This document shows, piece after piece, positions 10,764 to 39,533 of a stretch of DNA of 39,588 nt; the stretch's first letter is position 1, and each line of letters begins with the position of its first letter. Made by a program: the position numbers and the translations under genes. The stretch comes from Octopus bimaculoides (taxonomy: Eukaryota). Where the stretch lies: assembly GCF_001194135.2 (NCBI RefSeq), contig NC_069001.1, forward strand, positions 20,936,275-20,975,862, written 5' to 3'. The notes below the pieces were generated by a model. The model searched no databases. It saw only the letters and a list, made by a program, of their open reading frames with translations, and was not told where the DNA came from.

Positions 10764-13156
10764 CATGCATAAGCAACCTACGGCCTGCGGGCCAGATTTG
10801 GCCCACAAAGCCTTGTTTTCTGGCCCGCAGAGACCTGTAACAGTATGGCCGTGAAGTGGTTAATTTTCTAGTCTGGCTGACTCGTAGAGTAAATAGGCAA
10901 AAACAAAACAAGCTTTCGTGGAGTGCACTGTAGGAAAAATTCTAGGAAATGTGAAAGGACTAAATCTGTAGAATTAAAATAGAGGAAGTGAAACTCATGT
11001 TTCCTCCAAAAAGAGACAGGAAACATCAATAATAAATTAAACTAATCGTAAGCCTTACTAGTCAGTGAGTAGCTAACTTTCAATCTGTAAGTTTATTTCT
11101 TCTTGACACAAGTGAATGATCAACATTTCATTCACGCACTCACTCAACTCTCTCAAAACCAAGAACCAGTTTAGTGAACGACCAAGCCTATTAATATGCT
11201 AATATGCAAAGGCCAGAAATAACTCCACTTAAATGCATTTATCCAAACAATTGACTATTGATAATATCAGCCATGCACTACATACTACTTCATTCTTATT
11301 CCTCTGATTAAGTATGTATTTTCCTTATATAAAGTTCATATTTCACACCCCAGCATGTGCTCTGTTATTTATCACCACTATCTATATCTTTGCCTCGAAT
11401 TATTCAACCCTAAAATGTCGTCATCAAGAAAGAGAAAAGGGGATAACAAATCTCAAGTGTTCCAAGAAAAGTGGATCAATGATTATTTTTTCATACAAAT
11501 CAAACATAAACCAATGTGTTTACTCTGCTCAGAATCAGTTTCTGTCATTAAAGAATATAATGTAAAAAGACACTCATCTCATTATGAAAGCTTTCAAGGT
11601 CAACGTAGGAAACAAAAAGTTGAAAATTTAATAAAAGATTTGAAAGAGTAGCACACAATTTTTGTCAAGAGACGTGAAGATAGCAAAAATATTATTCATG
11701 CTAGTTATATCATTAGCGAGAAAACTGCAAAACATTCGAAAAATTATTCTGATGGTGAATTTGTAAAAGAACACCTACAAGCAGTAGCTGAAATTTTTTG
11801 TTCGGGTAAAAAAAAAAGAAATTGATAATATTAGTTTGTCTTGTAGAACTGTAACAAGGTAGACTGACGAACTTGCAACTAATGTAGACTTGGGCATGAA
11901 AAGACTTTCTTCGCATTTTAAATATTTTTCCTTAGCTATTGATGAGAACACTGACATGTCAAATACAGCCCAACTTGCAATTTTTGTATGTGGAATTGAT
12001 GAAGATTTAAATATCAGGATATTTTTCAAGAATTGAAAATGTTATTGGCCAGATTTAATTTACATTTCAAAAACCTTCATGGTTTATCAACAGATGGTGC
12101 TCCTGTGGTGGTTGGTAGTAAAGCAGGCTTAGTTTCTAAAATCAGATCGGAATTGGCTTCTATGAATATAGACACAAAAGATTTATCCATTTTTCATTGC
12201 ATAATTCACCAGGAGAATTTGTTGCGCCAAGTCACTCAAATTTGAACATGTCATGTCCAAGGTTGTTTCGAGTATAAATTTTATAGAATCTCGAGCTTTG
12301 AACCACCGCCAGTTTAAAGAATTTCTTGAGGATATCGAGGCAGAGTATGGAGATTTGGTTTACTATTGTGAGATGGAATGGTTGAGCAAAGGAAAAATGT
12401 TGAAATGATTTTATGATCTGAGGAGTGAATTTTTTACATACATAGAAATGAAAGGAAAGTCTGTGCCCTAATTGAGTGATGATGGTTGGATATGTGATCT
12501 TGCTTTTCTTGTTGACTTTATTTCATATCTTAATGACCTTAATTTGAAATTGCAAGGAGAAGGCCAATTCATTCATCAGTTGTACAGTCATATCAAAACA
12601 TTTCAAACAAAATGCAACTGTGGGAACAACATCTCAGAAATTGTAATACATTCCATTTCCTAACATTGGCAATTCATGGCAAAATCAATTGTACTTCTTA
12701 TGCAGATGAGGTAAAATTGATCAATGAAAAATTCAATAATAGATTTCAAGATTTCATTATCACAAGAAACATATCTATGTATATTTTCTTCACCTTTTGA
12801 TATCAATATTAACCAAGCTCCCGAGGAATTACAGATGGAATTAATTGAACTTCAAGGGAATGAAGATTTAAAACAGGAAATGAGAGATCGTTCACTAATA
12901 GAGTTTTATAAAAGCCTATCTAGAGAAAATTTCCCCTTGATCGTGGATTTTGCTAGAAAGAAAATGTTACTCTTTAGGAGCACATATAAATGTGAGCAGC
13001 TATTCTCAAAAATGAATTCTACTAAATCCAAAGCAAGATCAAGAATAACTGATAATCATCTTGAAAATAACTTGAGAGTAGCCACTGCTAACATTTCTTC
13101 AAACATCGAGATGTTGGTGAAGAAACATCAACCCCAAATATCCCATTTAAATAATG
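10764..13156 (+). mobile_element. Decayed hAT transposon, Buster/SPIN-like (GTF2IRD2-type transposase); right TIR not found
   Basis: Left end catgcataagcaacctacggcctgcgggccagatttggccc. Transposase pieces 11415-13155: KRK..FQEKWINDYFF..KPMCLLC, FSLAIDENTD, STDGAP, HCIIHQENL, WICDLAFLVD, STYKCEQLFSKM. Confidence 0.9.
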
Positions 13157-13260
13157 TTTCATGGCTATTTTCTCCCTACAAGAATGAATAAATTATTTTA
13201 CTGATTCAACTACATTTGTTTTATATTAATAATTTGTTTTGTTCTTACCCTTATTTTATT

Positions 13261-14410
13261 ATCTGAGATGGGAGGAAAACGTGGCCAGTCACAGAATCTC
13301 ATGGAAGGAACTTTGGGCTTGGGAACAAGCAAGAACAGCCTTCCTGATCAAGTCTACCTTCGACGTTCTACCCTCACCGGCGGACTTAGTTCGATGGAAC
13401 ATAAAAACAACCGATGAATGTGGATGCGGGGAGAAAGCGACGGTGAGACACGTTCTGTCAAGCTGCAGACTAGCACTGGAAAGGTATACATGGCGCCATA
13501 ATCAAGTCCTTGGCGTCATAAGTGCAGAACTCAAGGAGAAGATCGAGGGATACAACAGAGGAGAGTACCCCAAAGTGGAAAAGCGCAGGAAAATATACTT
13601 CCAGAAGGAGGGGAAAGGATATAAGATCAGGCCTCCNNNNNNNNNNNNNNNNNNNNNNNNNNNNNNNNNNNNNNNNNNNNNNNNNNNNNNNNNNNNNNNN
13701 NNNNNNNNNNNNNNNNNNNNNNNNNNNNNNNNNNNNNNNNNNNNNNNNNNNNNNNNNNNNNNNNNNNNNNNNNNNNNNNNNNNNNNNNNNNNNNNNNNNN
13801 NNNNNNNNNNNNNNNNNNNNNNNNNNNNNNNNNNNNNNNNNNNNNNNNNNNNNNNNNNNNNNNNNNNNNNNNNNNNNNNNNNNNNNNNNNNNNNNNNNNN
13901 NNNNNNNNNNNNNNNNNNNNNNNNNNNNNNNNNNNNNNNNNNNNNNNNNNNNNNNNNNNNNNNNNNNNNNNNNNNNNNNNNNNNNNNNNNNNNNNNNNNN
14001 NNNNNNNNNNNNNNNNNNNNNNNNNNNNNNNNNNNNNNNNNNNNNNNNNNNNNNNNNNNNNNNNNNNNNNNNNAAATTTAGACAGTGTCACGTGACAACT
14101 AGCTGGGGCTGCCTGCTGGAGCCTAGCAGCAGATATAAAAAGGGGAACTTGACATGACGATCAGTCGGACGCTGACACTCGTTGATGCTGCATCAAAGAG
14201 GCCAGGGAATAGAAGAAAGAAGACATACACCCAACCCCAGAGTTGAAGACACCTCTGAAAGGAGGGGCCCCGCCACGTCAAAACGGTAGAGGAGTAGGGG
14301 CCGAAACTGGACGTGGTTCCTCCTGATGATGTCTTGAGCTAACTGGATCCTATAAAGGAGCTGTTGTGGTAGCAGACCACGAAACATGGTTGAAATTCCT
14401 CCAGTAAATT
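13261..14410 (+). mobile_element. 5'-truncated RLE-type non-LTR retrotransposon, HERO-like; endonuclease probably inside the 437-N gap
   Basis: Stop-free, GC-richer ORF with FDVLPSP..L.RW...C.CG...T..HVLSSC..AL.RYTWRHNQVL (CCHC knuckle). The post-gap GC-rich 14074-14410 is inferred to be the 3' UTR. Confidence 0.75.
13637..14073. other. Assembly gap (437 N)
   Basis: N run. Confidence 1.
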
Positions 14411-14429: not shown

Positions 14430-16440
14430 AAACATGACAAAACCAAGTAAAACACCACAACCAAAATGCAAAGTCCATCAAGCAAACATCAACAGGAACA
14501 TAAATCATAAACAGAGATAAATCCATTTTTTAATGTCAGGACAACAAAAACCAGAGAAAGAAAAATCCAAGAGGAAACACACCCAAAACAACCGAATGTA
14601 TTGATCCTAAAATAATTAATTTATCCAAAAGAGATCTTGACAATGATGAAATCTAACTTCTGTCAAAAGGACTGAAATTCACACCTACATCAACAGTCAT
14701 CCAGAAATTCTGTTGTAAGTTACAACTTATAGAATTCTTCACTAATAAAAGTAATGAGATTGATGAACCCCTAGTAAAGTATAAATCAAATTTCACTCCA
14801 CCAAAAGTAAGAAATAACTATCTTAACCAATACATTGGTATCCTGTCTAAATTTCCCCTTAGACACAATACTAATGTTAGGCTAAACATTAACAAATCAG
14901 AGATGTCTGCACTTAAAATGTATACAAAACAATCAAACAATAATAATTAAACAAGCAGATAAATTGGGTGCAATTGTTCCGAATACTTCAAGGATTTGGT
15001 TGAGGACCAACTGAAGGACACAACCTTCTATTGTGAAATACCTTCAAATATAGACCACCACATCATGAAGAAGATCAACAACCTGGTTTCAAAATACTAC
15101 AACTCACTGATAATGAAAGAGACTACATCACCAATTTCATGCAACTTCTACGGTTTACCGAATATACATAAGACAAAAGATATTCAACATGCAGTAAAAG
15201 AACAAGAAAGTGAGTACATAAAATTACTATATCCCAAAGACTTAAAACATCAACCTATTATAGATGGTCCAGCATGCCCTACCCACTGTCTAAGCAAGTT
15301 TATTGACATTGTTTTGAAACTGCTATGTACCTACATACTCAGTTTCATCCATGATGACATTGACTTCCTGTCCCATCTTCCTAAAATATTTTAATTCAGT
15401 TTTGATGTAAGCCTTTACACCAATATTCCACATGATTTAGGAATAAAGGTGATTAAATACTGGGTAGAAAAACAGAAGTGATTCCCAACAGATTCACAGT
15501 GCCATTTATATTAGACACAGACTTATTCTGGAAAACAGCACATTCTTCTTTAATGGAAAGAATTACATCCAAATTAAAGATGGGAACGAGGTTTGTTCCC
15601 ATTTGCATGAACTCTGCTGTGGAATATTTAGAAGAACAACACAACCAAGAAGTAGAGAAAAGCTATAGCACCGAATTTTGAAAGTATATTGAAAAACCAT
15701 GGAAGAGATACCTTGATGACTGTTTCATTGTCTGAACAGACTCTAAATTCTCTGGAAGAGTTCACTATCCTCTTGAACAACGTACTCTCATCTCTTCAGT
15801 TTACAAAGAAGATGAGTAGTCCCAAATTACCATTCCTAGACATAATGGTAATTAAAAAAGACACCACCATTACCACAGATATATACTTTAAACATACAGA
15901 CATACATCAATAACTGAATTTTAAGTCGTGCCATCCACCACATTCAAAATACAACATCCCATACAGCTTAGCCAGAGGAATTTGTACAATTGTAGAAGAT
16001 GCAAATATCAGGAATAAACACCTAACAGAACTAATAGAATTTTTGCTCAAAATACCCCTCTCAATAACAGAAAATGGCATACAGTAGGCTATAAAAGTAC
16101 CCGTACAGCAACTTAGGACAACCCAAAGAAGAAAAGAAGGACAAGTCATACCATTTATAGTAACACACAATCCATGTAACCAGAATATCTTCACCATTGC
16201 CAAAGCAAACTTACCAATCATTGCTCAAAGTAATGAATTAAAAGATATAATCACAGATCGAGCAATGGTTTTTAGTAAAAGACAGTTTAAAAACTTGAAA
16301 AAATTATTAACAAAGGCAAAGTTTGATCTTAATAACAAAGGCAAATCATTCATTGTATCTAAATGCAATGATAGCCGATGTGGCACATGCCAATATATAC
16401 CAGCCAATATATGACCACAAAATCCGGAAAAATATTCACA
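14430..16440 (+). mobile_element. Decayed Penelope-like element (N-terminus and RT; resembles Neptune group, clade tentative)
   Basis: LLSKGLKFTP, KQADKLGAIV, FYGLPNIHK, SFDVSLYTNIPH, WKRYLDDCF, LPFLDIMV, CHPPHSKYNIPYSLAR, KCNDSRCGTC; many frameshifts. Confidence 0.9.
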
Positions 16441-16456
16441 AACGTAAGCATAAGAG

Positions 16457-16490
16457 TGGCTGTGTGGTAAGTAGCTTGCTTACCAATCAC
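16457..16490 (+). mobile_element. SINE family A head fragment
   Basis: ggctgtgtggtaagtagcttgcttaccaatcac; matches the heads at 21960-21986 (minus) and 35390. Confidence 0.6.
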
Positions 16491-16773
16491 ATTATTATTA
16501 TTATTATTATCATTATTATAATTATCATTATTCAGGTCACTGCTTGGAATTGAACTCGGAATCTTGGAGTTAGTTGCCTGCGCTCTTAACCACTATGCCA
16601 TATGACCTGACTAATAATAATAATAATAATAATAATCGAAAAATACCTAAGGAATGAGAACCCAGGTTCGTAATTTCCCTAAGACACCTGATAAAGGCTG
16701 GAGGGTATATCAGCTGAAACGTGTTAACAACAAACGAGATGAGGACAAATATCTGTCAAATATAAATAATGTA
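16491..16773. mobile_element. SINE family E (tRNA head + (AAT)n + hammerhead body), head inverted relative to body
   Basis: Minus-strand tRNA-like head 16535-16607 (A box tggcatagtggttaag, B box gagttcaattcc, acceptor ggtcat/gtgacc). Plus-strand body 16603-16773 is homologous to 27020-27179. Confidence 0.85.
16683..16725 (+). ncRNA. Hammerhead remnant in SINE E (probably inactive)
   Basis: gacac CTGATAA a ggctg-gagggtatat-cagct GAAA cgtgtt. G8 is changed to A and 2 nt are missing at the cleavage site. Confidence 0.55.
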
Positions 16774-17082
16774 AATTATAATAAAGGTGATGATAATGGT
16801 GATGATGATAATTGAAAGGAAAAAATCCCTGGGAAATGTTTACAACATTTCTAAAAATAACCAGACAGTTACTGCTTTGGCCAGGGTCAAAATACAGGTC
16901 TCTTGACGCCTAAACCAAACACTAATGAACTGAAATAATTTAGTGAAGCCACACACTGATTGGTCAGAATACAGTTTGCAAAACTTAACATTCTGGAGCC
17001 TACACAAATGTATTTAAGGCACACATTTGAGCCATCTCACTACAGTTGTAAATTGTAAAACATAACTGTCGCCACTACTATA

Positions 17083-17127
17083 TGAACCTGAAGATTGCAT
17101 AAGTTAATGCATGAAAGTACTAGTTCA
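17083..17127 (+). ncRNA. Minimal type I hammerhead ribozyme (core intact, palindromic helix III)
   Basis: tgaac CTGAAGA t tgcat-aagtta-atgca t GAAA GTAC TA^ gttca. Perfect 5-bp helix I, 5-bp helix II behind a U.U closing pair, AGTACT palindrome. Predicted cleavage after 17122. Confidence 0.8.
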
Positions 17128-18224
17128 ATCAGAATGGACATTTAATAATTCTATCATTTCATTATATTATATTATCTCATATTATATTATTATAAAATTG
17201 TAAATAAAATGTGAAAATCAGACAAAGTTAGAATTCCTTTGATTAATATTATCTTCTATACACAGCTATACACACCCATATATATATGTATGATGCATCA
17301 ATGTGGTCCATGTCAATTTGTACATGTATATACAGTGAGTATAAACTGACATATACCACAACGATCACCTTTGGGATATATTCAAGCAGGATCACATTCA
17401 CTACACCTATACAGCCTCACATGTGCCTATTTTACAAAGTTGTAAGAAAACCAGTGGAGGAATCAAAATTTAAATTAAACATACAATGACAAAGTTCAGA
17501 ACGGATATTTCTATCATCCTATATAAGCAACCTCATTTCAAAACAAATTATTGGTTATTCTCAAACAGGAAAAATGTAGTTGATATAAAAAAACAAACAA
17601 AACAATTAGCAATATTGCTGAAAACGTGTGAGAAATATGGTATAAGGACATTTCAATAGGAAAAAACAAATCCAGACTTTGTGTCAATGGAAACAGTTGT
17701 TTCTTGATGAATAAGCTGTGAATTCTGATAAGGACCCCCCAACAACTATGATATGCAAGTGAATGTACTTATACATGTCACAAGGACAAAAACCATAAAC
17801 CAAAACATGTATAATATAAATTCCCTCAACTACATTTTAAATTAAAATGCTAGTGAAAAAAAAAATACTGAAGTGGATCATTTTCAAGATCTAGACAAAG
17901 CTTGCCTGTATGAAAAGACACTCTAGAAATAAACATTACATTGTTTTCTAAAGTAGTTAGAGGCTTCTCAAAATGACAATATGTTTAAAATCCAAAACAA
18001 GACAAAGAATACAATGATAAACAATAAACAAAATGTTCGGATTAACAAGCAAAAATCATGATCATCATCATCATTATCAGCAGCAGCAGCAACAATAACA
18101 ACAGCAACAAATGTTAAACAAAGAAGAATTCATTTTTTTTTTTAGTGTTGAGACAATAAGCAGTATGACAATAGTAAGACAACAATAATCAAAAGAAAGG
18201 AAGAAACATCTAAAATGATTGTCA

Positions 18225-18600
18225 AAAAGGAATTCTGATAATAAACTTCTTTTGGCAAAGGGAATAAAATCAATAACAAGACTATGAAAGTGAAGAAGAT
18301 GAATCTCCTATAAGAAGCATATCAAAATCCCCTGTCTACAAGGAAGAAATCCTTTTCTAGACCAATATGCCAATATCCTTTCCAAATTCCTACTTAAATA
18401 GAATAGTTAGCCAAAATATCACCAATTTGGAAAAGTCTGCTCTTAAATGCCTCGGAAACAATAAAACAATAGTTACCAAACAAGTAGATAAAGATGGGGC
18501 TATTGTCATAAAGGGTGCAGAATATTATTGGGGTGTATGAAGAACAACTGAAGGATACAACCATACTTTGAAAGTGTTCACAAAAGCAATCGACAAAATG
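18225..18600 (+). mobile_element. PLE N-terminal fragment related to the 14.7-15.0 kb segment
   Basis: RNPFLDQYANILSKF...NITNLEKSALKCLGNNKTIVTKQVDKDGAIVI...EQLKDTT. Confidence 0.7.
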
Positions 18601-20030: not shown

Positions 20031-21281
20031 CAGGGGTTGGACAAAAATGTTGAAAAAAACCTTAAAATTTCAAGCAAATTAATTTTAATATGGGATAGGA
20101 CTGACTTTGGCAGTAATTACAGCTGGAATTCTATGAGGTATGGACTCGTACAAAATTTGAATTGTTTCCAAAGGAATTTTTGTCCATTCTTCAGCTAAAA
20201 CAGTCTCCAGTTCTTGTAGTGATGATGGTGGAGGATAACGACTCCTTACTTGTTTTTCTAAAATGCACCATAAATGTTCAATAATATTGAGATCTAGGGA
20301 CTATGGTGGTCAGATAAGATGTTCACCTTCACTAAAATGTTCCTTGTGCTATTCAGTAACAACTTTAGCTGTGTGAATTGGTGCATTATCATCCTGAAAG
20401 ATTGCGTTTCCCTCCAGAAACAGTTTCACAACCATAGGATAAATTTGATCAGATAAAATGCTTAAATAGTCTTGACTACTAATTCTGCCATGAAGGAAAA
20501 CTACTAGGCCGGTGGATTTCCAAAATATAGCCCCCACCAGATCATTACAGGTCCTCCTCCATGTTTAACAGTTGGAAGAAGACAGTCTGGGTCAACTGCT
20601 TCTTTTGGTTGTCTCCACATGTATACATGGCCGGTGGTCGGAAATCGGGTAAAGGATGACTCGTCCGAGAAAATAACATTCTTCCACTGCTCTAGGGACC
20701 AATTCTGTAGGTTTTTACTCCACTCTAAATGCTTTACAACGTTTGTTTGTGAAAGTAGTGGTTTTCTGATTGCAGCCCTCCTGTGAAATCCGGCTTTGTA
20801 CAGCTCCTGGTAAACAGTTTTTGTGGAAACTGGGTTCTCAAGGTGGTCATTAAGCTCTGCAGTAATTTTGGGAGCTGTACTTTTGTGATCCTTCCTAAAA
20901 ATTTGCGTAAGAGTCTGACAATCCCTGTCTGAAAATTTTGGTTTTTCTACCTGAGTTTTGTTTCGACAAGGAGGTTTTCCCCTCTTTCTCAAAGGCTGTC
21001 ATTACTTTTGAGACAGTACTATTTGATACACCAAACATTTCAGCTGTTTTCATTACGCTAGCACCTAGCATACAAGTACAAACAATTTGACCTCTTTGAA
21101 AGTCCGATAGATCTGTTATTTAAATGAATTTTAATTAGCTTTTTCTGATATCTGAAAAGAAACAGCAATTTTAGCAAGACATATTAAGCAACACTTATAA
21201 TAAATCAAAATACATAAAAAAACAAGCTTTTGATGGTTTTATAGATATTTCAAAATTATGATGCTATGATGCTAACTCTTG
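20031..21281 (-). mobile_element. Decayed Tc1-family transposon
   Basis: TA + caggggttggacaaaa left end; degenerate right end. Minus translation LSDFQRGQIV, RKPLLS, WKNVIFSDESSF, TVKHGGGPVMIW, FQDDNAPIHTAK. Confidence 0.9.
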
Positions 21282-21306
21282 TATTTTATTTTGGTTGAGT
21301 CAGTCT

Positions 21307-21354
21307 CTTGCTACCCTGTGTTTCACCTGTGGCTGCACAGGATCTTCAGGCACG
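21307..21354 (-). ncRNA. Type I hammerhead ribozyme (core intact)
   Basis: Reverse complement: cgtgc CTGAAGA t cctgtg-cagc-cacagg t GAAA C-acagg-G TA^ gcaag. Helix II 6 bp, helix I 4/5 bp, helix III 2 bp. Confidence 0.75.
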
Positions 21355-21534
21355 TTATGTATCATAGACTTCCCATCCCACACACAAGTAGGAATGGATG
21401 GGCTCAACACACAACAGTTTTTACCATTCAGGTTTTGGCTCTTATTGTCAATCACATTAAACTCCTACCTTTGCATGGTCTCTTGGTGAACTTCTGGCTC
21501 AAGATCTTTGCACTGCTATATTTTTTGTTAAAAA

Positions 21535-26050: not shown

Positions 26051-26377
26051 AAAAGTACTAGATTTCGTTCGACTTATTCCTTTTAGCGTGAAATTTTAAA
26101 CTGCACACTAACTTTTTGCTGGTTTGTTTTTAACAATGCAATTTTTTGGACGGTCTTTGGAATTTTTGCTTTGAACATCATTCTTGCTGGCATTCTTTAT
26201 AAAAAAAAAAAAAAAAANNNNNNNNNNAAAAGTACTAGATTTCGTTCGACTTATTCCTTTTAGCGTGAAATTTTAAACTGCACACTAACTTTTTGCTGGT
26301 TTGTTTTTAACAATGCAATTTTTTGGACGGTCTTTGGAATTTTTGCTTTGAACATCATTCTTGCTGGCATTCTTTAT
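26051..26377. other. 150-bp identical duplication across a 10-N gap (assembly artefact)
   Basis: 26051-26200 equals 26228-26377; both end in an A-run. Confidence 0.85.
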
Positions 26378-26487
26378 AAAAAAAAAAAAAATATATATAT
26401 ATAATAATAATAAATTAAGGAAAAGTTTGTACTTCAATGACCCAGTTGTCGTCACACCCAACCCGCCCCTATTGTAGCTAATACTGC

Positions 26488-26597: not shown

Positions 26598-26771
26598 GTG
26601 TTGCTAATATTACTCTTCAATTCTTTTTTAACATCCCACACCAAATCTATACGCATTTCTATATGGAGACTTTGAAAGCATCTATAGTGATACAGTTCTA
26701 TATTTAAGAGATGAGGAATTATGTACATTATTTACATTTGACGGATATTTGTCCTCATCTTGTTTGTTGTT

Positions 26772-26817
26772 AACACAACATTTCGGCTGATATACCCTCC
26801 AGCTTTCATCAGGCGTC
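26772..26817 (-). ncRNA. Minimal type I hammerhead in SINE E (core intact, helices weakened)
   Basis: Reverse complement: gacgc CTGATGA a agctg-gagggtatat-cagcc GAAA TG TT^ gtgtt. Helix I 5 bp (2 G-U), extra A after A9, A.C at the base of helix II. Confidence 0.7.
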
Positions 26818-26864
26818 TCGGGGAAATTTCGAATCTGAGTTATCATTCCTAAGATATTTTTCGA

Positions 26865-26908
<44 letters not shown>

Positions 26909-27088
26909 GGGTTACTGCCTGGAATTGAATTCGGAATCTTGGAGTCAGTAGCCCGTGCTCTTAACCACTACAGGCATATGGCTACTAACCCCAAGATTCC
27001 GAGTTCGATTCTAGGCAGTAACCGGAATAATAATAATAACATCGAAAAATACCTTAGGAATGAGAACCCAGGTTCGAAATTTCCCCAA

Positions 27089-27131
27089 GGCACTTGATGA
27101 AAGCTGGAGGGTATACCAGCCAAAACGTGTT
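27089..27131 (+). ncRNA. Hammerhead remnant in SINE E (inactive)
   Basis: ggcac TTGATGA a agctg-gagggtatac-cagcc AAAA cgtgtt; C3>T and G12>A. Confidence 0.55.
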
Positions 27132-27201
27132 AACAACAAACAAGATGAGGACAAATACCCGTCAAATGTAAATAAAGTATGTATAGTGATGTTGGGGTTA
27201 T

Positions 27202-28166
27202 CCATACATACACACACACTTCACTTCACACAAGGACACATCTAGAGACACACATCCACACATATGGAGATACACATCCATACATACAGACACAGTACAT
27301 AGTCACAAAAAAGCCCATACACACACACACAGACACACTCAAACATGCACACACAAGGAGACAGAAGTGCGCGCACACACACACACACACAAAACACACA
27401 CACGAACACAAAGACAGGAATATGCAGAATACATACATTCAAACGTACACACATACATATCTATACATACGCACACACACATATACATGCATACATACAT
27501 TTACATGCATGCATACATATATACATACATGCATACATGTATATGCGCACACACACTGACCCACACACATGCACACAAACAAACAAAAATAACACAGCTC
27601 GGATGACAGACAGAGTCTAACTATTGAAAAGGTTGCAAGATGCAATGAAAATTTTAGGAAAAATAATTAGGTAAATGAGTGGAAACTGTCAGTGAGTGTG
27701 TTAAATAATAAGGCACTAAAAGCGAATGACTCTCCCCAGACACAACAAAATATGCTTCAACACATGATCTCACATAAAGAATCTTGCAAACCAAATCCAA
27801 AAAACGAAAAAGTATATAAATGTTTTATTTGTATTTATATGTATAGATATGTATGTGTGTACGTTTGAATGTATGTATTCTGCATATTCCTGTCTTTGTG
27901 TTTGTGTTCGTGTGTGTGTTTTGTGTGTGTGTGTGTGTGTGTGCACGCACTTCTGTCTCCTTGTGTGTGCATGCTTGAGTGTGTCTGTGTGTGTGTNNNN
28001 NNNNNNTGTCTCCTTGTGTGTGCATGCTTGAGTGTGTCTGTGTGTGTGTATGGGCTTTTTTGTGACTATGTACTGTGTCTGTATGTATGGATGTGTATCT
28101 CCATATGTGTGGATGTGTGTCTCTAGATGTGTCCTTGTGTGAAGTGAAGTGTGTGTGTATGTATGG
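27202..28166. repeat. Near-identical inverted duplication of a CA-rich segment (27202-27469 / 27838-28166)
   Basis: Unique anchors (cacaaggacacatctagag, gtcacaaaaaagccc, gacaggaatatgcagaat) occur in reverse complement. Arm 2 contains a 10-N gap. Confidence 0.9.
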
Positions 28167-31632: not shown

Positions 31633-34519
31633 CAGTGTTTCCCGAACATTCCGTGCCAAATTGCAATATCGCCCACCTTTTGGCCAAAAAATGCTCCATC
31701 GCCTACCTGTGTAAAAAAAGACCCTGACATCCCCTGCCAACACAAAATCTCCTAGCCCCCCCCCTATCATTTTGACACACACACTATATCGTAGACTCAT
31801 TGTCCTGTTTGGACTAAATATGCAGTTGTTTACAAATCCATTATTGTGGGTTTACTTTTGCTATTAGTGTCAATAAAATTCTTACATTAACTCTATATTT
31901 TTCAGACAGATTAACTGCTGGAAACTTGTGCTTTCTTTTACACTGATTTTCATTTTTCCCAAATGAACCATTGATCAGAACTACTGATGCAAAAATAATT
32001 AATGATTGTATTATAAAGGAAAAGAATAAAACTTTTTTAATGAGAACCATGTGTATAGTGTGATGCAGGTAGTGCAGATACATTTGGTTTCAAACTTATC
32101 AACTTTAGCCGCAAGTCTCCTCATTATGTCACATCCAGTCCAATTCTTTTATGGGAAAGCAAAGTTCCAACATGGTTAAAACTAGATTCAACCAGGTATA
32201 AGGTAGGGAAAGCAAGCAAAAGTAATTTCAGATGTTTCCACAGACTGGGGTAGGAATTCAATATACTTTGATGGTACCACAAACCTTTGCCATTATGGCA
32301 ATATCACATTGTGGTGTCATTGTCATTTTGTAATTCTACCAATTCCTCTTGAACGTCATCCTTGCAATCGACTGCATCGACCTCAAATGGATTGCTATAC
32401 CAATTTGGAATATTCAGCGCAATAACATCTTGAAATCGCTCCACCGTGTTATCGTGCAATGATTGTAAATAGTTGCGATATGTAGTTAAATCCTCATCAA
32501 CCAATTCATCTTTCAAAGAATCGAGTTGTGGAAATTGATGGAATTAACGTTTTGAAATGTTAGTCTTAAACAACACCAATTTCGAAATGAAGGTAGTGAT
32601 AAATGATTTACAATCAACGAGAGTTTTTCTGTTTCCTTGCAATAACTTATTCAAATCATTTAATTTTGTGAATATATCACAAAGAAAAAAGACATAGCAC
32701 CTTGCAGCCATCAATGAAGTGGATAATGGAGTATCTTTAAAGAAAGATATGATTATATGAAACAGTTCAACAAAGCGTAAAGCACAATTTCCTTTTGACA
32801 GCCACCACACTTTGGTATGGTATAAGAGTTTAGTATGGTCTTCATCATTTCTCAGACAGAGTTGATGGAAAAGTCAATCAGCCAAGGGAGTGGACTTCAA
32901 TTTGTTCCCAGTCTTAATAACTAACTGTAGCGCACATTCACTCGTCTGTTCATATTTTTTGCCACTACATGCTGCCGGTGTGCCAAGCAATGAACGGTTA
33001 GTATCTGGTGGGAAATTTCATGCTTTAGGAGAACTGAAAAGCCCCTGTATTTTTCTATCATCGAAGGGGCTCCATCAGTCACACAGGCAAGAATATTACT
33101 GAGTGGGATATTATGTTCAAAAAGGAAAGATTTAAGAGTGAGAAAAATAGTTGCACCTTTTGAATCAAGTGGAAATTTCTCTGTGAACAACATTTCCTCA
33201 CAAGGTTGAAGGTCTTTACTGAAATACCGAACATATACCATCATCAAACATTGATTTCCGCAACAGTTGATTCATCCACTCGAATAGAAAATTCAGAACA
33301 CTGGAGAATATTAATGAGCTAACGTTTGACATTGTTATCCATTTTATTGATACTTTAAGAAATCGTGTTATTACTAAGTGGGATCTTCATAATGTTGTGA
33401 GGTTTTTCGTGCATAACACTTGACAAAACCTCTTCAATAACTGGGCAAAGTCATGTTTCTCCAATTGTGTGAGACTTCTCAGACTTAGAAAAAAGCAATA
33501 CAATGTTGTATGATGCAATCAACCTATCATTTTCCTGTTAACTAGTTTCCTTAAGTAGCATGTTGAATGTTTGTATTTACTTTTTGAAAGAGCTCACTTA
33601 CAAAAAGTATGATAATGGCTTGTCCTTGTCAGAATGCATCAAAGTGATACTTCATGCATGAAGGTTTCATTGCTTCATTGGTCAATGTCTGATGGCAAAG
33701 AAGGCACATTGGTAACTGACAGTTCTGAGGAGAGGGAATAAATCCAAACGATAAATAATCATTACTGTACTGTTGACAAATTTTCTTGACTGGAGGCATC
33801 AGTAAAGTGAAAATATGAAAACGAATTTCTACAGATGGTGTCAGAAAGGCAGTATGGTATTCCCAAAGAGAAGCAGAAGTCAATAGAGCAGAGTCAGATG
33901 ACATGTCTTTACTGGAGCAAATACGGATCTNNNNNNNNNNTGTTTTTAAAAAGTTATAGAGATTTAAACTTTGATCATTTTCACCCAGTCAAGAAACATG
34001 ATTTCAAAGCTGTCATTTTGTGCATGACTGCACATTGTGTTAATATTCTGAAAATAGCGCTTGTGTTTTGATATGAAACCACAGAATTACACACGACATA
34101 TAACCCCTCATAACTTTTTCATTTTTCAGATTTTCAGGAAATTTTTGCAAATTTGAATTCTATATGCAGGACTTCATACGATTATGCAAAAAAAAAAAAA
34201 AATTGTAGTAGAGTGTGATTTAAGGCCTAGGCCTATTTGGCTGCTATTTTTAGCATGCACGACAACCATCTCAATGACTGTGACAAAAATATTTGCCCGA
34301 TAAACAAGTCTGTGTTTATGCGAGTAGTCAAATCAATAAAAGTGCATCCTTATTCTAGGCATGCCTAGATATCAGTAAATGCAGACTTAATTTCTAAAAA
34401 TTCATTGTCACCCACAAAATGTTCATATCACCTGCCAAAATCTCAAATTGCCCACCATTTTCTAGAAATTTGCCCATCATCCACTTGTAAGTTGAAATTG
34501 CCCACTTTGGGAAGCAATG
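31633..34519 (-). mobile_element. Full-length decayed hAT transposon (ZBED5/ZBED8/Buster-like transposase) with TIRs and 8-bp TSD
   Basis: TIRs cagtgtttcccgaac / ctttgggaagcaatg; TSD gcttatgg (31625-31632) / gcctatgg (34520-34527). Transposase KKICQQYSNDYLSFGFIPSP..PMCLLC..NEAMKPS, VTDGAPSM, VHCLAHRQH, WWLSKGN, LNDLNKLLQG; subterminal (c/t)gcccac motifs. Confidence 0.92.
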
Positions 34520-38698: not shown

Positions 38699-39387
38699 TA
38701 TAGAAACATGTCTCATAGCACCAGCACACAATTTACAGATGCTTTACATCTTTTGTTTTCCATGAAGTTGTCACAGGTCCAGCTAGTTTTTATTATTATT
38801 TATTGTCTTTGCACAGCTTCTAATGCTGGAGATGTACTATGGTGCCAGATGTTCACTACCAGTGAACTAAGGTAACACCCGTTATTTTTTTACCACCATC
38901 TGGAGTAGTCAAGCCGTTCCAAGCAGTGCTGTTTTCTGAAAGTGCTCCACCCTTATTGCAGCCCCAATTTGTTTCATGTACTTCCCAAGATTTCTGCTCA
39001 CAGTTTCCAGGTCTCCAACAATTATTGGTACTACTACCACCTTTTCCATCGACCACAACTGCTTAACCTCCCAAGCTAACCTATCATATCTATTGACTTT
39101 TCTTTCTTCCTTATCGCATACCTTGTTGTCAGCTGGGCATGCTTTCTTTCTCAACGCTATGTCTGGTTTCCTATTCTCTATCTCATGGTCACACTGAATC
39201 ATAAAATTCCATAGGATCTTTGCATTATCATTTTCAATGATGCCTTTGAGTTTATGTTCATACCTCTTTTTTGCTCTGTCAAGTCCATTCTTGTTGCAAG
39301 TATAGAAACACCTCTCATGGTACCAGCACACAATGTACAGATGCTTACATTTTTTGTTTTCTGTGAGGTTTTTATGGATCCAGCTAG
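38699..39387 (+). repeat. ~88-bp direct repeat (38699-38786 / 39301-39387) flanking the Dong-like LINE
   Basis: Hand alignment gives about 73/88 identity; both copies end in ccagctag followed by T. Confidence 0.85.
38787..39300 (-). mobile_element. 5'-truncated R4/Dong-like RLE LINE with (AAT)n tail
   Basis: YEHK..GIIENDNAKILWNFMIQCDHEIENRKPDI...ACPAD..V..KE..K..RY..LAWEVKQLW..VVVVPIIVG.L..V...QKTALLGTA; 3' UTR ends in aataaataataataa. Confidence 0.88.
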
Positions 39388-39482
39388 TTATTATTGTTAA
39401 ACCCTTTGCAACCTTCATCCTGTCTTTGTCCTTACATGTTTTTAATTTATATTAGCCCTTGTGGCCAATAAAACCAGAATTA

Positions 39483-39533
<51 letters not shown>
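39483..39533. repeat. (ATT)n microsatellite
   Basis: Direct reading. Confidence 0.95.

Follow-up and report, generated by a model that had tools for sequence, protein, structure and literature searches.

The stretch of DNA analysed here (the window) comprises 39,588 nucleotides of the Octopus bimaculoides genome (contig NC_069001.1, positions 20,936,275 to 20,975,862), and coordinates are counted from its first letter. A pair of inverted repeats at 26.9 kb in this window was best explained as a composite non-autonomous retroelement, namely a short interspersed element (SINE) with an RNA polymerase III (Pol III) type head and a retrozyme-like body carrying a minimal hammerhead ribozyme motif, probably mobilised by Penelope-like elements (PLEs). 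The probability of this reading was estimated at roughly 60%. The element would be composed of a head similar to that of MIR and CORE-SINEs, with A and B boxes, followed by an (AAT)n linker and about 1.35 hammerhead units. A first, sequence-only reading had proposed a tRNA-derived SINE that captured the pseudo-long terminal repeat (pLTR) of a PLE and inserted as a head-to-head palindrome.

The palindrome was real. The inverted-repeat scan of the pair gave arms of 126, 60 and 53 nt with 83-96% complementarity, and two 5'-truncated copies of one repeat, lying head-to-head, were mapped to 26692-27181. In each arm the order was head, (AAT)n linker and body. The bodies measured 143 nt in the minus arm (175 nt with a 3' extension) and 142 nt in the plus arm, with 90.7% identity to each other. 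The features of the pair, with its target-site duplication (TSD), were as follows.

26683-26691, no strand: left TSD copy, TATAGTGAT; the same 9-mer stands at 27182-27190, directly outside the arm ends.
26692-26979, minus strand: minus arm, with 72 nt of head, 41 nt of (AAT)n, 143 nt of body and 32 extra nt.
26692-26723, minus strand: 32-nt 3' extension of the minus arm, in which a second repeat unit begins, making the copy terminally redundant.
26724-26866, minus strand: minus-arm body; identity 90.7% with its plus-arm counterpart, 88.3% with the body at 16.7 kb.
26867-26907, minus strand: minus-arm (AAT)n linker, 41 nt.
26908-26979, minus strand: minus-arm tRNA-related head with A and B boxes, about 9 nt short at its 5' end when aligned to the full head at 16532-16611.
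26980-27181, plus strand: plus arm, with the last 46 nt of the head, 14 nt of (AAT)n and 142 nt of body.
26980-27025, plus strand: 3' part of the plus-arm head (B-box region), about 32 nt short at its 5' end when aligned to the full head.
27026-27039, plus strand: plus-arm (AAT)n linker, 14 nt.
27040-27181, plus strand: plus-arm body, with a short 3' end.
27182-27190, no strand: right TSD copy, TATAGTGAT, identical to 26683-26691.

The homology with a public pseudo-protein, P0001 (UniRef A0A0L8FV75_OCTBM, Octopus bimaculoides), stopped at the left boundary of the minus arm, where TATAGTGAT sits, and the right copy of the 9-mer began exactly where the plus-arm homology ended. A shared 9-mer was expected by chance in 3.3% of random window pairs of the same generous scan sizes. 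The direct repeat, which had gone unnoticed in the first reading, looks like a TSD around the whole pair, which was read as one insertion because this single 9-bp repeat brackets both arms. The junction had seemed odd, and a skip of about 20 nt through template switching had been invoked to explain it. With the full head at 16.5 kb as the alignment guide this became unnecessary: the letters 'caggcatat' belonged to the minus arm, which runs on through them (reverse complement ATATGCCTGTAGTGG; the head at 16.5 kb has CATATGGCATAGTGG), and the two truncated copies simply abutted with 1-3 nt of microhomology. Nor did the arms have to come from different templates, since the 32-nt difference between the outer ends recurred in a distant relative (contig L053, described below); the long and short arms were also rejected as proof of two source subfamilies. 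The 32-nt extension was common to P0001, P0172, P0173, P0176 and other pseudo-proteins, in which it reads ..HNSSSLKYRT. It aligned to the next unit of the tandem array in L053, and both ended at the same unit position. The copies in the window are old: their bodies are about 9-12% apart, and an intact ribozyme core is kept in the minus arm only.

A near-complete palindrome of 490 bp between 9-bp direct repeats would also suit a DNA transposon of the foldback or MITE (miniature inverted-repeat) type, bounded by long inverted repeats and a Mutator-like TSD. The termini, however, were not inverted repeats of each other, the outer 32 nt of the left arm being unmatched on the right; moreover, the third copy in the window was a single arm and the relatives of the repeat formed direct tandems. 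This explanation was rejected as very improbable.

The bodies carried a type I hammerhead motif of the minimal kind in three states of preservation.

26771-26818, minus strand: minimal type I hammerhead of the minus arm, aGACGC-CUGAUGA-A-AGCUGG-aggguaua-UCAGCC-GAAA-UG-U-U^GUGUUa.
27088-27134, plus strand: decayed plus-arm hammerhead, in which C3>U and G12>A are accompanied by a deletion of 3 nt; U17 is lost and helix I is out of register.
16682-16728, plus strand: decayed hammerhead of the 16.7-kb copy, with G8>A and a 3-nt deletion.

The core of the minus arm was intact (C3-U4-G5-A6-N7-G8-A9, G12-A13-A14, A15.1/U16.1 and an H17 other than G), and the predicted minimum-free-energy fold of this arm formed a helix I of 5 bp and a helix II of 6 bp. 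A full descriptor, covering helix I, the core, helix II, self-complementary positions 15.2-16.2, U16.1 and H17, had exactly two matches in the window, one in a PLE at 17088 (plus strand) and the other in the minus arm at 26812 (minus strand), the latter with G.U allowed at 15.2-16.2. The statement that no copy was fully canonical was thus too pessimistic. No match to this descriptor was obtained in 1500 shuffled windows, and a descriptor limited to the core plus helix II had four window matches against 0.18 expected. An unpaired A stood between A9 and 10.1 in all window copies, and positions 10.1-11.1 were A.C or G.U, each one transition away from G-C. The hallmarks described for PLE minimal hammerheads are an unpaired nucleotide between A9 and 10.1, a G10.1-C11.1 pair and a palindromic 15.2-16.2 (Cervera & de la Pena 2014, PMC4209133), and the assignment of the motif to the Penelope type was upheld on these three features. 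The Rfam microRNA matches in the window were merely the hairpin made by the palindrome.

The unit was then found to be widespread. An earlier search with the pseudo-open reading frame (pseudo-ORF) had returned one match (P0001), and an exhaustive profile search with the ORF that runs through the minus arm returned 63 public pseudo-proteins. Their 68 segments read T-P-[E/D]-E-G-[W/R/Q]-R-x-Y-x-P-K-[R 31, C 18, H 11]-C (58/68)-[G/V/D]-N-N, which back-translates to CC-UGA-RGA-R-GG ... CC-GAA-A-CGY-UGY-G, the R/C/H column being CGY plus its two CpG-transition products. The majority codons (GAR for E, GGN for G, CCN for P) gave G10.1-C11.1, with CG as the majority at 15.2-16.2. Hence, the family consensus was CUGARGA-R-GG..CC-GAAA-CG-U-U^GUG, with the core retained, and the GAAA-CG-UU^GUGUU that had been reconstructed from three copies was backed by the 68 independent segments and by the DNA of the relative L053. 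The plus-arm and 16.7-kb copies were 3 nt shorter (GAAACGU---GUUAAC), with loss of U17 and of the helix I register. Since the long form GAAA-CG-U-U^GUG is the family consensus, the deletion is the derived state; alignment of the three bodies showed that it spans 3 nt and not 2, as had been counted.

That an ordinary repeat resembles a hammerhead by chance, or that the assembly is at fault, was suggested by the silence of Rfam and by a scaffold with N gaps and a perfect 164-bp duplication nearby. Against it stood the absence of any match in the 1500 shuffles, the conservation of the motif in the 68 segments and in unrelated contigs, and the difference of about 9% between the arms, which therefore were not an assembly duplicate. 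This alternative was considered effectively refuted.

The repeat has been annotated as protein because many copies have one frame open across the hammerhead unit. Many of the pseudo-proteins were tandem, with a period of 43 residues, and in P0173 an antisense body followed by a sense body was translated in a single ORF. P0174 (RefSeq XP_052825882.1, O. bimaculoides), a 94-residue 'dystrobrevin beta isoform X1', had the head-derived IWHSG spliced onto the body-derived EGWRVYQPKCCVNNKQDEDKYPSK (EGWRVYQPKCC..), so that its N-terminus consists of the head and body of the SINE, through either exonisation or an annotation artefact. As a consequence, many 'uncharacterized proteins' and at least one Octopus RefSeq isoform are translations of this repeat. 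Nine pseudo-proteins of a distant subfamily (P0199, P0204, P0210, P0215, P0219, P0220 and others) shared the N-terminus MANGIRTGDPRGFNKG.SSKF upstream of the hammerhead unit. The portion 'ANGIRTGDPRGFNKG', common to the nine, back-translates to GGN ATH CGN ACN GGN GAY CC and could be a tRNA-like B box, in which case a Pol III head may precede the unit there too. Exact 18-mer scans of metagenome contigs and of bacterial and archaeal genome contigs gave chance matches only.

Two public contigs provided relatives at the DNA level. L053, a eukaryotic ENA contig, carried a 5'-truncated inverted copy followed by 2.7 direct 130-nt units, the whole complex being enclosed by a 12-bp TSD, TTACATTTTTTT. 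Its unit read ..ACAC-CUGAAGA-A-GGCCGA-aggauaua-UUGGCC-(G/A)AAA-CG-U-U^GUGG. Over its full length, the long-form octopus body aligned with about 1.4 of these units, so that it is a more-than-unit copy with termini that repeat each other in diverged form. The 3' terminus of the octopus body corresponded to the unit position at which the L053 array ends, the short terminus of the plus arm lay a few bases at most from the point where the L053 inverted copy ends, and in both cases one outer end was longer than the other, by 32 nt in the window pair and by 34 nt in L053. Judged from these alignments, the body would be better described as about 1.4 units of a widespread, retrozyme-like tandem hammerhead repeat of about 130 nt than as a captured pLTR. 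The second contig, L052, a Logan contig ending in a common octopus SINE, contained an inverted body truncated at its 5' start, followed by the 3' part of the head, (AAT)n and a body, and its pair was possibly flanked by a 15/17 direct repeat.

Inverted partners were present at five loci (26.9 kb, 16.5 kb, L052, P0173 and L053), usually within one TSD. According to Craig et al. 2021 (PMC8557442), PLE insertions are marked by pLTRs, a terminal-repeat hammerhead, a neighbouring inverted copy with a truncated 5' end, tandem or more-than-unit structure and a one-sided extension of 30-40 bp. The inverted 5'-truncated copy, the more-than-unit length, the extension at one end and the single TSD were all found here. 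The view of the inverted copies as a PLE hallmark was thus sustained. An ordinary SINE mobilised by a long interspersed element (LINE), for instance a Dong/R4-type LINE specific for (TAA)n, would make the hammerhead an inert fossil and the pairs independent insertions or products of twin priming. The (AAT)n tracts that flank or link the modules and the TSDs of 9-17 bp, which fit the target-primed reverse transcription of LINEs, speak for it, as does the report of Dong-R4 as the most active LINEs in O. vulgaris (PMC13282606). Nevertheless, no LINE fragment of the window resembled the body, classical twin priming yields non-overlapping segments of one RNA rather than overlapping copies, and PLE traits include inverted partners that recur with truncated 5' ends, tandem copies longer than one unit and an extra 30-40 bp on one side. 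We regard mobilisation by a LINE as improbable.

The joining of head and body was assessed at a further locus of the window, at 16.5 kb, where a third body lies with (AAT)n before it and then a full-length head in the opposite orientation.

16491-16611, minus strand: full-length head (16532-16611; 8-bp terminal stem TCAGGTCA/TGACCTGA) and its (AAT)n (16491-16531), which no body follows.
16612-16779, plus strand: (AAT)n (16612-16636) and body (16637-16779), head-to-head with the inverted head.

The body at 16637-16779 was 88-89% identical to the other window bodies. Head, linker and body were collinear in three sequenced copies (both arms and L052) and, by inference, in a fourth represented by the spliced P0174, and the body started at the same base next to (AAT)n every time. 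The association of head and body held in these few copies and not at the 16.5-kb locus, with its bodiless head and a body facing an inverted head.

The same observations bear on the possibility that the mobile unit is the hammerhead repeat alone, as a PLE-derived retrozyme-like element or truncated pLTR copies, with the head and (AAT)n as passengers and no Pol III-driven SINE involved. The passengers could derive from an old SINE in the source copy or from a microsatellite target near SINE tails. L053, a distant relative, carries the repeat without any head; all three body-bearing copies of the window are 5'-truncated at different points, like truncated cDNAs; and the head and (AAT)n at 16491-16611 lack a body. 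Furthermore, paired minimal hammerheads on opposite strands, 100-700 bp apart, have been ascribed to truncated PLEs (PMC4209133), and PLEs prefer microsatellite targets (PMC8557442). On the other hand, the order and orientation head-(AAT)n-body recurred in both arms, in L052 (another sample) and in a spliced O. bimaculoides product, and the body began at a constant base beside (AAT)n. The (AAT)n at 16612 sits 5' of the inverted head and so does not form its tail, and the sense strand is free of Pol III terminators. We hold an independent hammerhead repeat with passengers to be possible but unlikely.

The Pol III character of the head was supported by an A box, TGGCATAGTGG, and a B box, GAGTTCAATTCC, identified by eye and 44 nt apart, the former good and the latter fair. 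The internal promoter boxes stand at the 5' end of the element and no internal terminator follows: runs of four T were absent from the sense strand of every copy, compared with a background of 8.8 per kb. The head resembled the tRNA-related head of MIR/CORE-SINEs over about 75 nt, a likeness that we take to be a lead rather than a test, and it shared the sequence ..GCATAGTGGTTAAGAGCACGG.CT.. and a B box with the MIR consensus. Of the tRNA-like Pol III head that had been postulated, the promoter boxes held up; the likeness to a tRNA was not borne out by any cloverleaf or tRNA model applied to the head. The single ARAGORN call obtained at a threshold of 60% was implausible and was discarded.

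A degenerate PLE surrounds the 16.5-kb locus, whose block of about 16448-16809 is a clean insertion into its GIY-YIG endonuclease coding region.

14729-17330, plus strand: degenerate PLE, with reverse transcriptase (RT) ORF remnants at 14729-16447 and GIY-YIG remnants at about 16810-17000, interrupted by the 16.5-kb SINE block.
17082-17128, plus strand: minimal hammerhead of the PLE 3' untranslated region (3' UTR), AUGAAC-CUGAAGA-U-UGCAU..AUGCA-U-GAAA-GUAC-U-A^GUUCAA.

Its ORF remnants shared 46% identity with full-length proteins that contain RVT_1 and GIY-YIG domains; Pfam did not recognise this degenerate PLE, whereas the homology search did. The hammerhead was followed by an AT-rich microsatellite, and PLE relatives from public contigs had the same hammerhead architecture 130-500 nt past their stop codons. 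PLEs have been recently active in O. vulgaris (PMC13282606). In the block itself, the first ~40 nt of another, very common octopus SINE head (GGCTGTGTGGTAAGTAGCTTGCTTACCAATCAC) occupied 16448-16490 (plus strand) and were interrupted by the (ATT)n of the inverted head; this fragment is 3'-truncated, which implies a later deletion or rearrangement in the block.

Several results weighed against a PLE-mobilised hammerhead SINE. When the window and the PLE contigs were compared, no autonomous PLE had a 3' end homologous to the body: the 3' UTR of the window PLE was no closer to it than shuffled sequence, and the hammerhead of that PLE was a different variant, with a U bulge and a GUAC palindrome. 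No LINE or PLE of the window or of the fetched PLE contigs resembled the body or shared a 3' end with it. Within these sequences, the search for a partner through PLE 3' ends came back empty. As for the motif, a covariance model (R1) built from six PLE hammerheads scored the minus arm at 7.6 bits, in the expected register, and missed it in a window-wide search, with nothing at E<=10. Rfam found no hammerhead in the window at its gathering threshold or at E<=10, a silence that is uninformative because Rfam also misses genuine PLE hammerheads. Inactivating core changes were present in two of the three window copies and in both L052 copies. Helix II was 83% paired in six DNA copies and included one compensatory change, U-A to C-G, which speaks for the motif but, with so few sequences, was not significant by shuffling. 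In the head, ARAGORN called no tRNA at default or relaxed settings, and Rfam gave no tRNA match at E<=10. Finally, the head at 16.5 kb points away from the neighbouring body and has none of its own, and the sample of pseudo-proteins is biased to copies with an open frame. In addition, RNAcofold predicted no intermolecular ACGU helix for the octopus motif, while predicting one for the PLE controls.

On balance, the composite SINE was retained as the preferred reading, and its life cycle might run as follows. The (AAT)n linker would be the former tail of a head-only SINE. Pol III would transcribe from the head through the body, read-through being expected because the sense strand has no T4 terminator. 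The terminally redundant hammerhead module at the 3' end would then be used in trans by the RT and GIY-YIG endonuclease of a PLE, and integration would proceed by target-primed reverse transcription at a staggered break, a mechanism suggested by the structure of the insertions. Both nicks would prime cDNA synthesis from the 3' end of the RNA, and two 5'-truncated cDNAs would meet head-to-head and be joined at 1-3 nt of microhomology. The outcome would be an inverted pair in a single TSD with one outer end about 32 nt longer. More speculatively, the hammerhead may process multimeric transcripts, or it may bring two RNAs together at the palindromic ACGU in helix III. A bolder proposal, put forward tentatively and in our opinion unlikely as it stands, is a hammerhead-SINE superfamily of cephalopods, perhaps of other invertebrates too, in which a Pol III head joined to a retrozyme-like unit hijacks PLEs and in which two RNAs, joined at the palindromic helix III, allow both nicks to be primed.

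Other features of the window were recorded as well. Immediately to the right of the SINE pair, a large low-complexity inverted repeat, CA-rich/TG-rich, occupied 27321-27469 and 27838-27996, with arms of 83-96 nt that were 91-93% complementary. To the left, a 164-bp direct repeat with 100% identity and 13 bp between its copies (26051-26214 and 26228-26391) has the look of a duplication made in assembly or gap closing, or else of a tandem one of very recent date. The fragment of a second PLE, from its 5' part, lay at 18340-18562 (plus strand). A third hammerhead-like site, at 21306-21355 (minus strand), read ACGUGC-CUGAAGA-U-CCUGUG-cagc-CACAGG-U-GAAA-CAC... and scored 16.3 bits (E=0.08) with the PLE hammerhead model. 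It had the U...U flanks of the PLE variant, without a proper helix III, cleavage site or helix I, and is probably a decayed PLE pLTR. Other transposon remnants were located at 12724-13191 (plus), 32921-33247 (minus), 20504-20992 (minus), 13239-13626 (plus) and 38909-39418 (minus); among them were hAT/FAM200-GTF2IRD2-like ORFs, with 77-85% identity to proteins from marine metagenomes and O. bimaculoides, a piece of a Tc1/mariner transposase and, beside an N gap, fragments of LINE C-termini. The window as a whole is AT-rich (35% GC), with N gaps and numerous transposon remnants. At 39483-39533, (ATT)17 was followed by a possible tRNA-like SINE head on the minus strand (GAGCTGCGCTCGGTAGTGAAGTTAAAGC), which fits a genome where many SINEs have (AAT)n tails.

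The role of minimal hammerheads in PLEs and the origin of inverted and tandem PLE insertions are two questions on which this element would bear. With about 300 nt, a Pol III promoter, one minimal hammerhead unit and inverted insertions bracketed by TSDs, it would be a small and tractable system for both, in which cleavage, dimerisation, circularisation and trans-mobilisation can be assayed. If the pairing of two RNAs through helix III is true, it would explain the frequent inverted pairs in PLE-type insertions. The element would also connect SINEs, retrozymes and PLEs in a single molecule. Full-text searches of the literature, with the sequences of Repbase, Dfam and SINEBase outside their scope, returned no cephalopod SINE described as carrying a hammerhead; in the giant squid genome paper, 235 Rfam hammerhead matches are listed with no further analysis.

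Compared with known systems, the octopus motif comes close to the minimal hammerheads in the pLTRs of PLEs (Cervera & de la Pena 2014, PMC4209133), which Lunse, Weinberg and Breaker reportedly described in 2017 as well. Both are of type I topology and share the CUGANGA/GAAA core, with one nucleotide left unpaired after A9 and before 10.1. In both, helix II is long, at 6 bp, and helix I short, at 5 bp, and both occur as pairs on opposite strands. Neither has a helix III beyond the palindromic 15.2-16.2, implying action as a dimer. They differ in that the octopus motif lies behind a Pol III-type head and not beside an RT or GIY-YIG ORF, and in that the window PLE and its relatives have a U bulge and GUAC or another palindrome of 4-6 nt.

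The non-LTR retrozymes of animals lack autonomy and have been suggested to rely on PLEs (Cervera & de la Pena 2020, PMC7229834; Li, Clavereau & Pollet 2026, preprint 10.64898/2026.07.22.740005). They likewise form short tandem repeats with a type I hammerhead in each, as in the 2.7-unit array of L053. Their units, which are expressed as circRNA, span 170-400 nt, in contrast to about 130 nt here, and the hammerhead of the octopus family is minimal, without loop-loop contacts. The octopus copies showed neither the tandem 170-400-nt units nor the canonical hammerhead of retrozymes, being single more-than-unit pieces fused to a tRNA-related head.

Among SINEs, the octopus elements OR1 and OR2 have been placed with the CORE-SINE/MIR-type heads (Ohshima & Okada 1994, as cited in PMC4824008 and PMC4758252). 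In the element described here, by contrast, no CORE domain follows the head, its place being taken by the (AAT)n linker and the hammerhead unit. This comparison was made with the MIR consensus rather than with the OR1, OR2 or OK sequences. A precedent for a SINE with a hammerhead is the Sm-alpha and Sj-alpha elements of schistosomes, SINE-like according to their summary in PMC8490949 (Ferbeyre et al. 1998; Laha et al. 2000). On that description, they share with the octopus element the nature of a short, non-autonomous, SINE-like retroposon with a type I hammerhead; the Sm-alpha ribozyme is portrayed there as canonical and fast-cleaving, with tertiary contacts, and that of octopus is minimal and belongs to a different phylum. 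The octopus element would extend this precedent to molluscs. What it would add to the known elements is a Pol III-type head attached by way of a microsatellite, an arrangement similar to that of composite SINEs, in which the tail of the left monomer persists as a linker.

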